Source of the DNA: Sminthopsis crassicaudata
Lineage: Eukaryota
Direction: 5' to 3'
NCBI RefSeq assembly: GCF_048593235.1
Contig: NC_133617.1
Coordinates: 68,409,767-68,473,766 of the forward strand
Length of the DNA stretch: 64,000 bases
In this document: positions 54,250 through 62,789 of the stretch, in pieces
How the letters are laid out: the number at the start of each line of letters is the position of its first letter
Position numbering within the stretch: position 1 is the first letter of the stretch
Position numbers and translations under genes: made by a program
Notes under the pieces: model-generated
Seen by the model: the letters and a program-made list of their open reading frames with translations, nothing else
What the model was told of the DNA's origin: nothing
Database searches by the model: none

Positions 54250-55000
54250 ATAGGTCCTCCCAGTCTGGGAATGCTACTGACCTGTTGTCCACTTGCGCAC
54301 CACCACCCCCAGACATATCCATACCTGGCCGGCGCTGTCCGGGGTCCTCGCGCCTAGCCGGGCCAGCCCCAGGCGCAGCTCGTGAATGTCCACGCGGCCA
54401 TCCTTGTTGCTGTCCAGCTCGTCGAAAAGGAGGCCCCATCGCTGCTGGCGCTCGGGGTCCCCGGCAGGGGGGCTGCGGCCCGGACTGGTCCTGGCCATGG
54501 CTGTACCGTGGCTACCACCCAGTGCCAGAGCCAGTGGCCGCCAACCTCATTCTCTTGCCCCGGCCCGGCCCCCCGGCCCTCGGGGGAGGGGGAAGGGGGA
54601 TGGAAGGAGGGGGGGAAAAGGAGGGGGTGGCCCGGGCTCAGCTGGAGCTTAGAGGCTCCCCCTCCCCCTCTCCCTTCCCCTCTCCCAGCCGGCCCGCACC
54701 CGGCAGGGCCGGGCCGGGCTGGGGCTGAAGCAATGACTGCTCTCTCAGAACAATCGAGTCCCTCCGCTTAAAGCCTAGACTACTGCCCCGGGGCTGGGAA
54801 AGCGACCCGGAGGAGGAGGAAGGTTGGGAGGGAGGCTGACTGGCTGGCAGGCAGGCAAGCAGACAGGCTTTCTGTGCTTGTCGTCGCCGCCCGGAGGAGA
54901 TCTGGCACCTCCTCCCCGCCCCCACTACCCTTACCCTTGGCTCGGGGGAGCAGAGAGCGGGGGGATGGTGAGGAGCTGAAGAGCCGGCACTCTTGGGTTT
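54250..55000. promoter_or_regulatory. SLC25A23 CpG island and promoter
   Basis: GC/CpG-rich, with GC boxes around exon 1. Confidence 0.75.
54325..54498 (-). CDS. SLC25A23: SLC25A23 coding exon 1 (EF1)
   Basis: gccATGG; MARTSPGRSPPAGDPERQQRWGLLFDELDSNKDGRVDIHELR...SAGQ|gtatgg; 174 nt. Confidence 0.95.
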
Positions 55001-55621
55001 AGGGATACTCCCCTCCCTTCTCTAGACACGTGGGATCGGGTGGTGAGGAATGGGACTTCTGCACCGCCCCACCCCCACTCCCCTCTTCACCCACTCGGTG
55101 GGTAACTCGTAACAGAAAGCGTGGGATCATGAGGACTCGGGGGCAGGGACTCCTGGGTCCTCCCTTCCAATACAGCTCGAGTGAGAGCGGGGGATGGTGA
55201 AAAGCTGAGATTCCTAGATTCTTGGTCTTCCCCTCCTCAGTCCCGTGGGACCTGGGAGTGAGAGGAGACAAGAGGGCAAGACCCAGTTCTGAGAGAGAAC
55301 AGAGAGAAGGGTAGTGAGGAACGGAGAGACTAGAACTCTTGGGGTCTCAGTCCTCCATTCCTTCAGCACCAGGGCTTCAGAGGATCATAGATTCAGAGCT
55401 GCCAGAGGCATCCGAGATCATCTAGTCACCGCGAGCTGGGGATGGTGAGGAGCTGGGTGGGAGGGAGAAATTTCTGGGTTCTGGGACTTATTCCCCTCCA
55501 TCTCAGTCTTGAGTGTGTGGAGAGCAGGAAGGTGAGGAACTAGGAGGGGGAGGAATTACTGGACCTTGGGTCTTCTCATCCAAGGAACTGAGAGATGGCT
55601 GAGGGATGGGAAGTGTAAGGA

Positions 55622-55925
55622 GTGTGTAAGAGACACAGAAGAGACAGAGGGAGAGACAGAGAGAGAGAGAGAGAGACAGAGATAGAGACAGAGACAGAGA
55701 GAGACAGAGACAGAGACAGACAGAGACAAAAAGAGGGGGGAGAGATAGAGACAGAGACAGAGGAGAGAGAGACAGAGACAGAAACAAAGATAGAGACAGA
55801 GACAGAGGAGAGACACAGAGACAGAGAAGAGACAGAGAGACAGAGACAGAGAGACACAGAGACAGAGGAGAGACACAGAGACAGAGACAGACAAAAAGAC
55901 AGAGGGGGAGAGGGGGGAGAGAGAA
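55622..55925. repeat. Compound (GA)n/(GAGACA)n low-complexity tract
   Basis: About 300 bp of agagacagagac variants with higher-order units. Confidence 0.95.
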
Positions 55926-57966
55926 AAGATATGGTATGTGTACAAGCACAGGGTGGGGAGGTGGGGCTGCTGTTAGGACTTCTAGGTTTAGCGCATAAAA
56001 CTGGAAGCGAGGTGGGAAAGACCATTGGGGAGTCGGGAAGCAGTGATGACAGGAGAAACCAGATAAGAGGGCTCTTTCCAAACTCAGAAAGCGAGGGTGC
56101 AGGAGGAAGCTAGAGACCAATCCCGTGTGCCTGGATGCAAGCGCTATTCCAGGTGCCTTTGCGTGACTCAGTTTCCCAGTTTCTTGGGAATCAACACCTC
56201 CTCCCCTAGCAGCGTGTGAGGGAGAAGAGCCCCAGGATCTTTCTAGAGTCGGATAATCTCCCTCAAGCGATTAGGGTCGAGGGGCCCCAACCTGATTTAA
56301 CGCTAACCCTCCCCCCAGGTCTGGTAAAAAGGTGCCTTGTTGACCGAAAATGAGCCCGCCCGCTCCTTTCCGAGGCATAACTGTGGTTGAGAATCCCAAG
56401 ATCAAAGCTCGGCCACGGCTCCTTCTTCGGCTCACCATTGGCTCCGGCTCTCAAGGCTGAGCTCAGCCTCCTCCCGCTGACCCCCTGCCGGCACGAGCCT
56501 CAACCTTTAGGCTCCGCCCGTCTCCGGAACTCCTTAAAGGGGCAGTGACCCAACATGTACAACAGGTGCCTCGGGTCAGAGAGTATTCAAGGTTCTCCTC
56601 CCCCCCCCTCTCCCCCCTCTCCCCTGCCAAATGCCGGCCATGCGTTAATCTCATGTCTAATGGAAGCTCCCAAAATGAAGAGTAGGTCCATTCTCTCGGT
56701 GCAGTTTCTCATTTCCACCACTAGGAAGACGTGCTTGGTTGGGGGAGATTTGGTAAGGGTCTGTAAGAGGAACTGATCCAATGAGAACTAGGGTAATGAA
56801 ACAGTTTCTCAAAAATAAAATAAAATAAAAATAAAAATAGAACCCTTTCCTCGAATTTAGTCAGTAAATGAGCATTTATTAAACGCCTATTTTATGCCTC
56901 CTGTGCTGAGCACGAAAGACAAAGGACAGTTCCTGTTTTTAATTGTTACACAATTGCAAACGCCTTTGTGAAGACCATTTTGGGACTCACAGGCCCTGAG
57001 GTTAGCAGGGTTCGGGAAAGAATTCTTGCAGAAGGTGGGACTTTAGCGGAGATGTAAACATAGGCAGAGGAATCAGGAGAGATGAGGACGAGAGAGTTGC
57101 AGGCATGGGAAACAACCAGCAAAAATAGCTGGAATCTGGAGAGTTCTCGTTTTGAGGAACATCAAGAACAACAATGTGATAGAACTGGAGTACATGGAGT
57201 TGGGAAATAAACTTCCCAGTTAGGCCTGGAAAGGTAGGAAGGGCCCAGACTGGGAATGCTAAGCAGTCTGGTTTCCCCTCCATAGGAACCAGTGTGGAGT
57301 GGAGTGGAAAGGGTGGGATGATTAGACAAACTTTAAGATCATTGATAATTGAGCAGAGGATGATCTGTGGTAAGGAAACACTGGAAGCAGGGAGATCAAC
57401 TGTTGGAATAATTCAGGCTTGAGGTGATGAGATTCTGCCTCAGAATGGTGGCAGTTTCAGAGCTAGAGAAGGGGCCACGTTAGAGAAATAGTGCAAAGGC
57501 AGAAACAACAGGACTTAATTAATTGGAGGTTAGTGTGAAGACTTGAAAATGACATTTAGGCTTCCAACTTCAAGGGTGGGATGATAGTGGTGCTCTTGGC
57601 CATATGAAGAGAGTTAGGAAGAGGAGAAATTGGGGGAGAGGATGAGTCAGTTTTGGACATGTTAAGTTTAAGATGTGCACAGCACATCCAGTTAGAGATG
57701 ACTAGTAGAAGAGAGCAGAGGGGCTATGTAGATAGTCTCAGTGCAGATAGTTTTTGGAATGCCACTGTGTGTACTCCTGATACCATGGAAAGAATGCTGA
57801 ATTTGGTGTTAAGGTGCCTGAGTCAGAATCCTACCTCTGCTGCTGCCTGTTTAACATTGGGCAAGTCATTTTAATCTTTCTGGACCTGAATTTCCTTATC
57901 TACAAAATGAGGGTTTGGAGTAGATTTCTGAGGTTTCTTCAAGCTCTTTTCAAAATCTATGAAATT

Positions 57967-58110
57967 GGGGCAGCTAGGTGGTGCAGTGGATAGAGCACCA
58001 GCCCTGAATTCAGGAGGCCCCGAGTTCAAATTTGGTCTCAATTAACACTTCCTAGCTGTGTGACCCTGGGCAAGTCACTTAACCCTAGCCTGGAAAAAAA
58101 AAAAAAGAAA
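57967..58110 (+). mobile_element. Full-length WSINE1 with A-tail and TSD
   Basis: ggggcagctaggtggtgcagtggatagagcacc...; A- and B-box-like motifs; TSD atctatgaaat at 57955-57965 and 58113-58123. Confidence 0.93.
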
Positions 58111-58129
58111 ACATCTATGAAATGATCCT

Positions 58130-59370
58130 ATGTGCCACATAAAGGTGTGTCTCCACATAGGTGTTCTCCCATGAAGTCATATTTCCAAGACACAGTGCTT
58201 CTAGTTAATTTCCCCCTCCTTACAGGTGTGGCTCAGAGACGTTTCCCTTTCCCCTTTATCATTATCCATTTGTTATTATCACTCTCCAGTGGTTGCCTTG
58301 GTGATTCTTTAGTACTGGTGGAATCTGGTGATTCTTCAGTCAGATAAATCTTGCTTACATTTTCCCACATACTTGTATTTCTCCTTACAGATGTGTTTCT
58401 ATTCACTGATATGGTTCATTCACAAGTGTGGGAGACACACCTGTTAAAACTCTCACTCATAATATCTGGGTCTTCCCAACAAGTATGTGGTCCCTCCTAA
58501 CAAGTCCCTTATTTTAGGTGTTTACTCCAACGAGTATGTTTCCATCACTATAAGCATGACCTTCATGTTTTCCCTCTCCTTTGAAGTCATTTTTCAGTCA
58601 TGTCTGACTCTTCATGACCCCTTTTGAGGGTTTTCTTGAAAAAAATACTGGAGTAACTTGCTATTTCTTTCTCTAGCTCATTTTATAAATGAAGAAACAG
58701 AAGCAAATGGGGTTAAATAACTTGCCCAGGGTCACACAGCTAAATAGTGCCTGAAGCCAGGTTTGAACTCAGGATGATAAATTTTCCTGTTCCTGGCTAA
58801 CTATTTTGTCCACTGTGGCACCTAGCTTCCCTTCAGACTTCTTTAATAGGATAGCTTTACTCCCCATTTGTGTTTTTTTTTCCCTTCTATTACAGGTGTA
58901 TATTTCCCAAAAAGTGTATATGTCTCCAATATTTCTCCCTATGCACCAACAGGCACACATTACAAATGTCTTTCCTAAAAATTGGTCTCTCCATTTAAAG
59001 TACTTCTCCTTTGGGGCGTATCTACCTATTAAATTACAGTAGTGTATTCTTCATTATGTTTTTACCTCATTAAAGATGTCTGTTCTCCCAATACAAGTCT
59101 GTTTCTCCAACAGATATTCCTACATGTTTCCCATTACAGATGTGTCCCCCTATGGGTTTAATGCTCCATTTAAATGTATGCTCCCTCACAGCTATATGTC
59201 CTCCTGCTACAGACATGATTTTCCCTACAGATGTATGTCCCCCACCCCCAACAGGTATGTCTCCTTAATAGGTGTTTCCCATTAGAGATGTATCTTGTAT
59301 TACTGGAGTATGTGCCCCAATACAGTCATTCCACCTTACAGGTGTGAGTCCTCAGTTACAGGTGTGTCCA
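58130..59370 (+). repeat. Degenerate short-unit array with TTACAG(G/A)TGT core upstream of CRB3
   Basis: Six exact TTACAGRTGT (58220, 58385, 58890, 59134, 59336, 59356) plus many variants. Confidence 0.8.
58585..58831 (-). mobile_element. Mar1-type SINE interrupting the array
   Basis: tcagtcatgtctgactcttcatgacccc...atactggagtaacttgctatttc...cttgcccagggtcacacagc...ccactgtggcacctagc. Confidence 0.85.
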
Positions 59371-59379
59371 AGTTAGCCC

Positions 59380-59910
59380 TGCCCCCTACCTGGGGCTCAG
59401 GTGCACAGACAGGAAGTTCGCTCCCCCTCCCAGGTGAGTGACTAAACTTTCCGGGTCACGTGAGCGGGTGGAGCCGGCTGGAAACGAGTAAGGGACAGAA
59501 GGACCGACTGGCAGACTGAGGACCAGAGCTAAAAGCTGGCGCCAGGTAGGAGGTGGGGCAGCTCAGCCCAACTCTTCAGTTCCCTCAATTTCTCTCCTGG
59601 ATCTCAAACCTTCTTCCGGGCCAAGATAGGTTAATCTTTAATTTCCAGCCAGGAAGAGCGGATGAGGGAGCTGGGAGGCGGGACTCGAGTTCCTTTTGGG
59701 CTGGGGGCACCTGCCCTGCAGGGATCCTGGGTCTGTTCCCTCCCCTTCCCCTCCCCCTCCCCCTCCTGGGGCCTTGGGCTCTCTCCTTTCTTCCCCTCTC
59801 CTTTCCCCTTCACAGTAGCCCGAGATGCAGTAGCCACCGGAGGTCCTGCAGTTTGGGAGCAGGAGCCAGGTCAGCCGAAGCATAGGCCTGGTTCGGTTCC
59901 CCAGGGGCCC
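59380..59910 (+). promoter_or_regulatory. CRB3 promoter and 5'UTR region
   Basis: CpG-richer; ETS-like ACAGGAAGT at 59410; GTCACGTGA at 59455; donors at 59434 and 59546; acceptors at 59815 and 59904. Confidence 0.65.
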
Positions 59911-59989
59911 ATGGCGAGCAGCCCTGGCCTGGGCCTGTGCTTGGCACTGAGCCTGCAGCTATTGAACTCCCAGCCCGCCTTGGCCCCTA
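59911..59989 (+). CDS. CRB3: CRB3 coding exon 1 (signal peptide)
   Basis: cccATGG; MASSPGLGLCLALSLQLLNSQPALAP; A|gtaagt donor; 79 nt. Confidence 0.88.
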
Positions 59990-60835
59990 GTAAGTAACTT
60001 CAGGTACTGGTGCCTTGTTCAGAGGTGAGAGCCAGGGTGCTTGTGTTCTCCACCCTGAGAGAAGGGAGACAGATTAGAGCTAAAATCCCAGTGGGGATAC
60101 CTTTCAGGATATATGATTAGAACTGGAGCCCAAGGACAGAGATCTTCTGTTTAGGAGGGAGGGTGGAGGTGGTGGTGATGAACATAACCAGAATGTCTAT
60201 ACCAGATGCCTGGAGACCTGGGAGGTTGTCTTAGCTGGGTTTCCTAAGGATCGATTTAGTTTGGAGAAACCAGCTGGAAGCCGGGACACTTGGATTCCCT
60301 CCTGGGAAAGGTCTTAGGATTTGTGTGCTGAGAGTAGGTAAGGCAGGATGCCAGGATATCTGGGGGAAGGGAGAAGAAGGTATTTGGAGCTAGAGGAATA
60401 GGAAGCCAGATTTTGGGAAAGAGGGGCTGAGGTTACATTCAATTTTAGTCCTCCTGGCTTCTGTCTGATATGCATGTTGTGTCCGGGCAAAGTCCCTTAA
60501 AGGGAAGGGGGTGGAGTTTGAAGGGGGACTAGAGTCGAGGAAAACTGGATTAGGGAAAATCTCGTTTCTGTTCTTGAACTGGACATAGGTATTCTAGGAT
60601 CTTCGGCCAGCTGGAGCCTTCTTGGGGAGTGGCTGTAATCTTTCTACTAGTTTCGGGAGCCTGGGGGGGGGGTGAATTTTGGTGACTCAGGCACTCCAGG
60701 TCTAAGTAGCGAGGCCACACCTACAGCCTGGGGTTGAAATGGCCGGAGGTGGGGAGGGAGGGGGCGATGGCTTTAGTTTTTTGAATGTGACTGCCGGAAC
60801 CCTCGGCTTCCCCCTTGCTCTCCTTTCTCCCATAG

Positions 60836-60906
60836 ACACTGACTACACTGGGTATGAGAACAACACTACTACCCCTTCCACAGCACCACCAGCCAGTGGG
60901 ACCCTG
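60836..60906 (+). CDS. CRB3: CRB3 coding exon 2 (short S/T-rich ectodomain)
   Basis: (N)TDYTGYENNTTTPSTAPPASGTL; pyrimidine tract plus tag| and |gtgagt; N-glycosylation sequons; 71 nt. Confidence 0.88.
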
Positions 60907-61237
60907 GTGAGTTTGTGGCAGGGAAAAGCATTTTCCTGGTAATATAGTATGATAAGGGGAGGCAGGAGATGATATTTATCCCTCAGTGACCTTGACCCAA
61001 ATTCTCTTTTAGCCTTTATCTTCCCATCTGTAAAGTAGGATGGGAGTGGAGTGGGACTTGGCGTTCCCTGGCAGCTCAAACTGTTCAATATTGTAATCTG
61101 TCCAACCCTGACCCTTTTAATAGAGAAATGTGGCAACTGGAGGAGGAGGGGGGAGGCGGTGTGGAGACTTGGGGGGAGGGGATTGACTGAAGATCCCGAA
61201 TGCCTTGTCAGTGGGTGACTCCCCTCCTTCCCCCTAG

Positions 61238-61444
61238 TCCCAGGGAGCAGTCACTGCCATCATCACTGTATTCTCAGTCCTGGGTATCCTCCTCCTGGTA
61301 GTGGCACTGGTCCTGCTAGGCCGGAAGCTTCGTGAGAAACGCCAAACAGAGGGCACCTACCGGCCCAGCAGTGAAGAGCAGGTGGGTGCCCGGGCTCCAC
61401 CGCCCCCCAACCTGAAGCTTCCCCCCGAGGAGCGGCTCATCTGA
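61238..61444 (+). CDS. CRB3: CRB3 coding exon 3 (TM and cytoplasmic tail, CRB3A; 118 aa in total)
   Basis: SQGAVTAIITVFSVLGILLLVVALVLLGRKLREKRQTEGTYRPSSEEQVGARAPPPPNLKLPPEERLI*; FERM-binding GTY motif and PDZ-binding ERLI. Confidence 0.97.
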   Translation, partial: SQGAVTAIITVFSVLGILLLVVALVLLGRKLREKRQTEGTYRPSSEEQVGARAPPPPNLKLPPEERLI

Positions 61445-61804
61445 GCACTTCATCCCCCTCTTCCTGCATGTAATCCCATGTCCCATTTCTGGTTTGGGAC
61501 CTGCTTGACATTGGGCATTCAACCACTGTGACCAGCCCCTTCAGGGAGCATCTGGAGTGACGATGAGGGCTTCAGATGCTAAGGGCTGGTAGGGAGTGGG
61601 CAGGGGGGCCCTGTCTAAGCTGCTGGCCATGGCCGACTTCACTGCACCACCAAGCTTGCTGCAGACTTTTGACTTTGGTCTGTGGACATTGGCCTGGAGA
61701 TGGCGGCTACTTCTGCTTCTCCTGACTGGAACTGTGGTGGCCACCTGGCCTTCTTCCCTGATGACCTGCTCCTGCCTTTCAACCCTGGTCTCCTTGCCTT
61801 TCAG

Positions 61805-61885
61805 TTGTCTCACGCGGCTGAAGCAGCCCCAGGGCCCCTGGACTCGAAGAACAAGGCGTGGGGCTGGGTGTCCTGCTGGGGTTAG
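61805..61885 (+). CDS. CRB3: CRB3B alternative terminal exon
   Basis: ttgcctttcag|LSHAAEAAPGPLDSKNKAWGWVSCWG*; in phase with the internal donor CAG|gtgggt at 61381/61382. Confidence 0.7.
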   Translation: MSHAAEAAPGPLDSKNKAWGWVSCWG

Positions 61886-62789
61886 GGTGTGTGCAAAAAG
61901 CCTGGATCCCCTTTCCCTTTGTGGGGAGGGGCAGAGACTTGGGTGGGTACCCACCCTGAGCACCCCTTCCCCCTCCCCAGGCCATTTGATTAACATTCCA
62001 CCCTCCCAAAGACTACTTAACTCTCTCAGGACTAACCTTCCCCTCCTGGTGAATAATAATAGGTATTTGTACTGAAAAGGAAGTGCTTGGAAAACTCTTC
62101 CTCTCCCCACCCCCTTTCCCGAAACTTATGTCTCTGGTCCTTTCTTTTTTCCTCTCTACCCCCCAGACCACTACCTCCTATTCCCTAGAACTGTCCCTGA
62201 GAAGGGCTGCTTGATTTGTATTTTTTATAAAGACGGTCATAAGGTCAAACCCAGTATTTTATCGAGTAGTGGTTGGGATATGGGGTTTGTGCCCCGGGGT
62301 AATGGCGAGTAGTAATTAAGTTTTTCCTTCCATACATCTTAGCTCACCTGATTGCTCAAGTTGCCTTTCTGCTCTAAACCCTAATTCTTTCACTAGTGAA
62401 AGCAACAGTTCCAGAATGTGTGACTAGGGTTTGATGCCAGAGACTCTAGAGGGGTCCCATAGCTAAATGGGAATAGTAACTGAAATTTTTCTGGTGATTT
62501 TAAAGCTTGCAGAATTCTATACCTTCATTATCTAAAGCTTAAGCACAACTACATGAAATAGATACCCAAAGTGTCAATGTTGATTTTACAGATGACAAGA
62601 GGTTTGGATCTTCTGTTGTATCACACCTAGTTTAGCTGTTGATGGACAGAGTTGGGATTGGAAGCTAGGGCTTCCTGACTCCACATCTAGCACATTATTC
62701 TAAGCCATTTAGTTTGGATTAAGGCTCTGGTGCCAGTTGTGTTACTAAGCGCTTGAAAGTTTATTTGCCAGGGGCCACCATAGAGCACA

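Follow-up and report, generated by a model that had tools for sequence, protein, structure and literature searches.

Promoter-upstream minisatellites or VNTRs that carry factor-binding motifs are represented by the insulin VNTR and by the 5-HTTLPR of SLC6A4, a repeat of 20-23 bp. Both are young, fairly homogeneous and length-polymorphic. For the gene considered here, CRB3, direct repression by SNAIL and ZEB1 through E-boxes is described in a review (PMC8624420, on Whiteman 2008 and Aigner 2007). A sequence-only reading of dunnart DNA had invoked this repression, as the review indeed reports it, and had proposed that about 1.3 kb of eroded E-box units directly upstream of CRB3 form a marsupial EMT-sensitive silencer. 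We analyzed this region in the window, by which we mean the whole 64-kb stretch of dunnart DNA, and compared it with the corresponding loci of devil (L009, L010), Antechinus (L011) and koala (L012), each with 10 kb of upstream flank, and of rat (L013) with 6 kb. We consider it probable that the 1.3 kb upstream of CRB3 are an ancient, heavily decayed minisatellite that runs into the core promoter.

Gene context and repeat structure

Counted from the inferred exon-1 start of CRB3, the array lies between about -1340 and -100 (Table 1). CRB3 was read as four exons from ORFs and splice sites; on the minus strand, SLC25A23 has its exon 1 near 54274-54498. Searches used individual CRB3 exons. A query with exon 4 returned marsupial CRB3 proteins, and a separate search with the intron-1/exon-2 ORF returned the Sarcophilus CRB3 model P0112 (96% identity at the N-terminus over 24% of the query), whose 90% cluster includes dunnart, koala, Antechinus, wombat and sugar-glider models. 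Exon 1 is 89% invariant across marsupials. The context of its donor is invariant in the three dasyurids, and the rat has CAGGTAGGGAGG a few bases away (alignment A2, in which koala is cut short there). CAGGTA at 59543, which had been counted as a box of the array, is this inferred splice donor. Contigs L001-L007, which matched exon 4, are non-marsupial, show 82% identity in the exon only and were left out of the comparison. One RNA contig of another marsupial (L008) begins in intron 1 and carries no upstream sequence. Those parts of the text and supplements of the dunnart ChIP paper that were accessible do not mention CRB3.

Table 1. Coordinates of the features at the dunnart CRB3 locus (positions within the window)
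Feature	Coordinates	Strand	Basis and remarks
Dunnart-specific SINE, tRNA-like head and A-tail	57966..58122	+	Abuts the 5' edge of the array, outside it
Array part A	58130..58584	+	About 14 decayed units of 16-21 bp (PWM); orthologous in four marsupials
Less regular stretch in array part A	58230-58360		
Embedded CORE-SINE (Mar1/MIR-type)	58585..58835	-	Splits the array; partial copies in the window and same site in four marsupials
Array part B, distal	58836..59326	+	About 22 decayed units (PWM); 74% of positions invariant in four species
Two most proximal, best-preserved units	59327..59366	+	PWM scores of 19.0 and 16.9 bits
Core promoter block	59367..59470	+	CAGGTG 59398, ETS-like CAGGAAGT 59410-59417, CAGGTG 59431, CACGTG 59457
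CRB3 exon 1, inferred, non-coding	59471..59545	+	Donor CAG/GT at 59545/59546; start putative
CRB3 exon 2	59826..59989	+	ATG at 59911; ORF and splice sites
CRB3 exon 3	60836-60906	+	ORF and splice sites
CRB3 exon 4	61238 to stop after ...ERLI at 61444	+	ORF and splice sites

Every coordinate that had been given for E-boxes proved correct by motif count. CAGGTG is found at 58223, 58893, 59339, 59359, 59398 and 59431, CACCTG at 58438, CAGATG at 58388, 59137 and 59228, and CAGGTA at 59252 in addition to the exon-1 donor. Exact TTACAGRTGT occurs six times in the window (58220, 58385, 58890, 59134, 59336 and 59356; 0.23 expected, 0/100 shuffles reach 6), and all six copies are inside the array and on the + strand. 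The proposed check of E-box enrichment against shuffled sequence came out clearly: 58130-59465 contains seven CAGGTG/CACCTG sites versus 1.04 in local dinucleotide-preserving shuffles (0/1000). Across the whole window these motifs show a mild excess (47 versus 34).

In each half of the array, autocorrelation is highest at lags 16-20. Some 38 units were recovered with an iterated PWM, arranged head-to-tail and on the + strand only, with the consensus ~TGTTTCCCCTTACAGGTGTG, in which a pyrimidine-rich spacer is followed by TTACAGGTGTG. The view that a tandem-repeat-derived E-box array lies immediately upstream of CRB3 is borne out by these units and lags. Its period is shorter than the 20-25 bp originally claimed: start-to-start spacing is mostly 16-21 bp (mode 16-18), with gaps. 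For cross-validation, a matrix trained on one half of the array was scored on the other half. Trained on 58836-59375, it gave 17.6 hits/kb in 58130-58584 and 0.42/kb in the rest of the window; trained on part A, it gave 20.4 hits/kb in part B and ~0.4/kb in the rest of the window. The cross-trained matrices had zero matches on the minus strand of the array. Autocorrelation and PWM scoring show the units. TRF, which had been suggested as a check, reports no repeat over the array even at score 30, so erosion appears to have gone beyond what standard tools detect. The boxes at 59398 and 59431 belong to the conserved core promoter and not to clear array units.

A search of Rfam with 58123-60000 gave no match. 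Two further readings of the units were dropped. AGGTGTGA is present at 59340, where it had been placed as a perfect T-box-like site; AGGTGT is part of the unit consensus, and AGGTGTGA reads AGGTGTGT in koala. Coding of a peptide repeat was set aside as well, with unit lengths of 14-26 bp that keep no frame. An ORF within the array (59076-59282), used as a query for orthologous Logan contigs, gave zero candidates.

Compared by BLAST within the window, the array halves produced self hits only. For devil, Antechinus and koala, PWM matches outside the orthologous site amount to 0.05-0.25/kb of the locus; for rat the figure is 0.15-0.31/kb. Within the DNA examined, the array is single-locus.

Two SINEs lie in and beside the array. 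The embedded element, a putative Mar1-type SINE after the name given in the sequence-only reading, has eight other partial copies in the window (BLAST, 72-92% identity) and is found at the same place in the alignments of devil, Antechinus and koala. Since array units flank it on both sides and it is common to the four marsupials, the array predates its insertion, as had been argued. Mar1 elements are common to opossum, wallaby and devil (PMC3403934). Just 5' of the array, the sequences of devil, Antechinus and koala align up to 57966 and resume at 58123, and this clean break identifies the SINE between these positions as a dunnart-lineage insertion. A direct repeat resembling a target-site duplication is present at 57952-57965 and 58110-58123. 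The element is probably of WSINE1 type, WSINE1 being a recently active dasyurid SINE (PMC3403934). Positions 58043-58122 were masked or excised in BLAST and alignment comparisons, and search references start at 58123; counts of base composition took in the entire window.

Orthology, age and constraint in marsupials

The whole SLC25A23-CRB3 spacer is collinear in BLAST, and identity over 58123-62436 is 92-93% for the dasyurids and ~79% for koala. Alignment A1 pairs the array, embedded SINE included, unit for unit across the four marsupials. Relative to the dasyurids, koala has ~50 bp (~3 units) and 23 bp (1 unit) extra in the array, and the Antechinus array carries a 10-bp duplication; copy number therefore differs between species by unit-sized indels. 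Because orthology holds unit by unit in dasyurids and koala, the array has an age of at least 55-60 Myr, the approximate date of the Dasyuromorphia-Diprotodontia split (PMC3403934), and both the array and its embedded SINE predate that split. Identity of the units to their consensus is 61%, and their JC distance of 0.56, compared with 0.10 per lineage since the dasyurid-koala split, suggests an amplification much older than this split under a clock that assumes a homogeneous start and ignores indel misalignment.

We compared the array with neutral and coding yardsticks at the same locus. Dunnart-koala identity is 82.4% in array part A and 82.8% in distal part B, versus 83.6% in the embedded SINE, 82.7% in intron 2 and 97.6% in the exon 4 coding sequence. 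Four-species invariance of the distal array (74.7%) is not distinguishable from that of the embedded SINE (77.7%; Fisher test, p = 0.37). It exceeds that of the SINE and introns 2 and 3 pooled (69.0%, p = 0.003), an excess due partly to koala gaps in intron 3. When the 36 distal units are pooled, invariance amounts to 71% at the six positions of the E-box core and to 79% at the other unit positions. Hence, the proposal that the whole 1.3 kb acts as a selected silencer does not fit the distal ~1.2 kb, which evolves at the rate of the embedded SINE and the introns.

The boxes themselves behave in the same way. Among the six distal CAGGTG/CAGATG sites of dunnart, one (58893) is intact in all four species, against a baseline of 25% for any array 6-mer. 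The box at 58438 is dunnart-only, those at 58223 and 58388 are lost in koala, and for 59137 and 59228 the loss concerns one or two species each. Conversely, an ancestral CAGGTG near 58950 is lost in dunnart and kept in the other three. Altogether, a box is present in one or more species at 15 aligned positions of the distal array, a single one of which has it in all four; the number of intact distal CAGGTG cores (2) is close to the 2.46 expected under independent column decay. Each marsupial has 3-6 distal CAGGTG-type boxes. The three distal CAGGTG of dunnart exceed shuffles (21/1000), and in every species tested the boxes outnumber those of shuffled sequence. The distal ~1.2 kb now drifts at the neutral rate, with boxes gained and lost without preferential conservation, and the bulk of the 1.3-kb array would be a neutral fossil.

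The proximal block (59327-59470) is different: 93.8% of its positions are invariant in the four marsupials, versus 74.7% in the distal array (p = 3e-8), and dunnart-koala identity reaches 95.8%. Windows of 30 bp from 59360 to 59479 have 93-100% of positions invariant in the four marsupials, and CAGGTG at 59339, 59359, 59398 and 59431, together with CACGTG at 59457, are identical in all of them. These ~140 bp are under strong purifying selection, with conservation about that of coding sequence.

The rat promoter and competing explanations

A rat segment (L013:5503-5585) aligns with 59394-59477 (84 bp, 83% identity). In alignment A2, dunnart and rat have in common the box at 59398, the ETS-like site (CCGGAAGT in rat) and the stretch from GTGACTAAAC through CACGTG; at 59431, the rat sequence is TAGGTG. 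The GTTACAGGTG of the most proximal unit (59355-59364) is aligned to an identical rat decamer, so that the boxes at 59359 and 59398 are both present in the two species. The constrained part is not a marsupial novelty, since its core and this most proximal unit can be aligned with rat. The two proximal units and the adjoining core promoter are best read as being, in part, the ancestral therian CRB3 promoter.

Upstream of rat CRB3 there is no array: TRF reports nothing relevant, no periodicity is seen, and the PWM yields only two unit-like matches (14.5 and 12.9 bits), which lie on the same strand at most 210 bp upstream of the conserved box. The second unit-like element (14.5 bits) is ~140 bp upstream of the GTTACAGGTG decamer. 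The SLC25A23-CRB3 spacer measures 2.95 kb in rat versus 5.1-5.4 kb in marsupials. One of the rat boxes is inside a sequence that, judged by eye, resembles a rodent SINE. In the 1.6 kb upstream of CRB3, the rat has 12 CAGGTG/CACCTG sites versus 1.4 expected (0/1000 shuffles). Most of these sites have an intact core and are not one-off variants, and no repeat ancestry is visible. From this excess, box density upstream of CRB3 may itself be selected, and the parallel between rat and marsupials raises the question of selection on site number.

We assign a probability of about 0.7 to the overall explanation that an old tandem amplification is decaying neutrally beside a conserved therian E-box promoter. 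A functional distal array seems unlikely to us. On this view the SNAIL/ZEB sites would form a homotypic cluster, birth-and-death turnover would maintain their number, and near-cognate units would serve as a reservoir in which single mutations regenerate CAGGTG; the view comes near the silencer idea of the sequence-only reading. The persistence of 3-6 distal boxes in every marsupial despite positional turnover, and their enrichment over shuffles in all species tested, are what such turnover would produce; however, a decaying array with the box in its consensus predicts such counts without selection, and the counts differ twofold, from 3 to 6. Moreover, the distal substitution rate equals that of the embedded SINE, the cores are no better conserved than the spacers, and the count of intact cores fits independent decay. 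As far as the alignments can tell, the rate and independence tests give no positive support to turnover, although four species have little power against a model in which box number rather than position is selected. The known repression of CRB3 through E-boxes speaks for turnover, as do the 12 CAGGTG in 1.6 kb of the rat, which are independent, have mostly intact cores and lack tandem structure.

The other alternatives concern where the array came from. A pre-therian array, which we regard as improbable, departs from the preferred explanation in origin only: a long array in the common ancestor would have been almost entirely lost in placentals such as rat and kept in marsupials. Unit divergence exceeds what each lineage has accumulated since the dasyurid-koala split by a factor of ~5-6, which agrees with so early an origin if the start was homogeneous, but the clock assumes exactly this initial homogeneity and ignores indel misalignment. 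The rat has two unit-like modules and an E-box-rich upstream region, as the remains of an array might leave; yet it has neither periodicity nor further units, its spacer is 2.2 kb shorter, and it is the one placental set beside the four marsupials. The array could have originated by amplification in marsupials or owe its distribution to loss in placentals. Hardly any weight falls on the idea that a dispersed TE or satellite came to lie beside CRB3 by accident and that the array is its internal tandem region, an outcome that the sequence-only reading had named as contrary to its own proposal. No second copy exists in the 64-kb window or, outside the orthologous site, in the 22-kb loci of devil, Antechinus and koala, orthology is collinear and single-copy with the same flanks in four species, and the array passes without a break into the conserved promoter; when the sequence was read by eye, neither terminal repeats nor target duplications were noticed.

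Under the preferred explanation of neutral decay beside a conserved promoter, an ancestral promoter-proximal TTACAGGTG module with its pyrimidine tract, of which the rat would keep two, was amplified in tandem by slippage or unequal exchange to give the array, and the distal copies would then have decayed neutrally. SNAIL/ZEB-type repression of marsupial CRB3 would operate via the proximal boxes under constraint, in the manner reported for the gene in placentals, and the distal boxes (3-6 per species) would be at most weak, redundant extras. By their position and constraint, the four proximal boxes are likely SNAIL/ZEB targets in marsupials. A more speculative possibility, to which we attach a low probability, is that the field of units amplified in marsupials from an ancestral therian, SNAIL/ZEB-responsive TTACAGGTG module still acts as a self-renewing reservoir that maintains several extra CAGGTG upstream of CRB3 in each species, and that E-box dosage, not a single site, is selected. 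If true, the field would correspond, in repeat-based form, to the non-repetitive 12-box cluster of rat.

Comparison with described promoter repeats and E-box clusters

The analysis separates a probably functional part of ~140 bp from a look-alike, the mostly fossil 1.3-kb array. The proximal ~140 bp offer a small, precise target for EMT-factor control of CRB3 in marsupials. The locus as a whole would be a case of a promoter motif that was amplified in tandem and then decayed, the ancestral SINE within the array providing an internal neutral control.

Like the insulin VNTR and the 5-HTTLPR, the dunnart array consists of head-to-tail units of 14-25 bp within at most ~1.5 kb upstream of a gene start, with a potential binding motif in each unit. 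It differs from them in its age of at least 55-60 Myr, in the ~61% identity of its units to the consensus, in escaping TRF and in holding the same position across orders. In its between-species substitution rate, the distal array equals the embedded SINE and so resembles the ancestral CORE-SINEs (Mar1/MIR) that serve as neutral yardsticks. Unlike CORE-SINEs, it is no retroposon, being locus-specific and derived from local tandem duplication. For the constrained part, the nearest counterpart is the cluster of E-boxes in the placental CRB3 promoter (PMC8624420): the gene is the same, and so are the CAGGTG-type boxes that sit shortly before its start. Rat sequence aligns with the proximal block of dunnart, boxes 59359 and 59398 being common to both. 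The marsupials differ in carrying an extra 1.2-kb repeat-derived extension, whereas the rat has dispersed boxes, the marsupial side of this comparison being known from sequence. Overall, we suggest that the array is best classed with promoter-upstream minisatellites, and that the constrained E-box cluster beside it represents the conserved CRB3 promoter rather than a marsupial-specific silencer.

Length variation of the array and the SINE at its edge

Alignment of the Antechinus (L011) and koala (L012) sequences to the window showed that array lengths differ among marsupials by unit-sized steps. Koala exceeds the dasyurids by ~50 bp (three units) plus a 23-bp stretch (one unit), in the parts of L012 that align near window ~58945 and ~59240, and one of the three additional units carries TTACAGGT. 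A local 10-bp duplication was found in the Antechinus array opposite window ~58500. The SINE bordering the array (see the table) is missing from devil, Antechinus and koala, and its absence from these species marks it as an insertion in the Sminthopsis lineage.

Features of the array edge, the SLC25A23-CRB3 spacer and CRB3
Feature	Window position	Details
Long CT/GA-rich low-complexity tract	55500-56120	reads as SLSLSL-type ORFs
Second CpG-rich patch	56000-56600	between SLC25A23 and CRB3 promoters; CpG o/e 0.5-0.6, GC 54-58%
SINE with A-tail	57966-58122	insertion point coincides with the array's 5' boundary; direct repeat on its two sides (57952-57965 / 58110-58123)
CRB3 intron 1	59546-59825	83% invariant across four marsupials
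CRB3 last exon	61238-61444	intact, with ERLI end

Composition of the SLC25A23-CRB3 spacer

Across dunnart, devil, Antechinus and koala, 73% of positions in the CpG-rich patch are invariant, and no obvious gene was seen in it. Koala gaps cover 30% of window 55001-56000.

CRB3 intron 1, last exon and isoforms

CRB3 intron 1 is unusually conserved, and 30-bp windows within it reach 90-100% invariant positions. The start of an RNA contig from another marsupial (L008:1-231) falls inside this intron, at the equivalent of 59756, and the NCBI/UniRef proteins modelled for Antechinus and Sarcophilus, 205 aa long, apparently start at an ATG within it. Together, these observations suggest an alternative start site or a retained intron. 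At the other end of the gene, 124-aa CRB3 models of devil and koala have a CDS range of ~1.9 kb and would end ~400 bp past the ERLI stop; P0113, an NCBI CRB3 model named Sminthopsis crassicaudata within the Sarcophilus cluster, is also 124 aa long. Hence, an alternative last exon or isoform is implied. ERLI-type models of 116-118 aa are present in the Trichosurus cluster. Seven Logan genomic contigs (L001-L007), each with a 54-aa exon-4 ORF, were left out of the comparisons. Their identity to the window is only 82% and is confined to the exon, so they derive from non-marsupial species.

E-boxes upstream of rat CRB3

The rat region upstream of CRB3 (L013:3900-5520) lacks tandem-repeat structure. 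One of its boxes, at L013:4383, sits inside an apparent rodent SINE. CAGGTG/CACCTG occurs 12 times in these 1.6 kb, versus 1.4 expected from shuffles; the majority of the boxes lie on the + strand close to the gene, with their cores intact.
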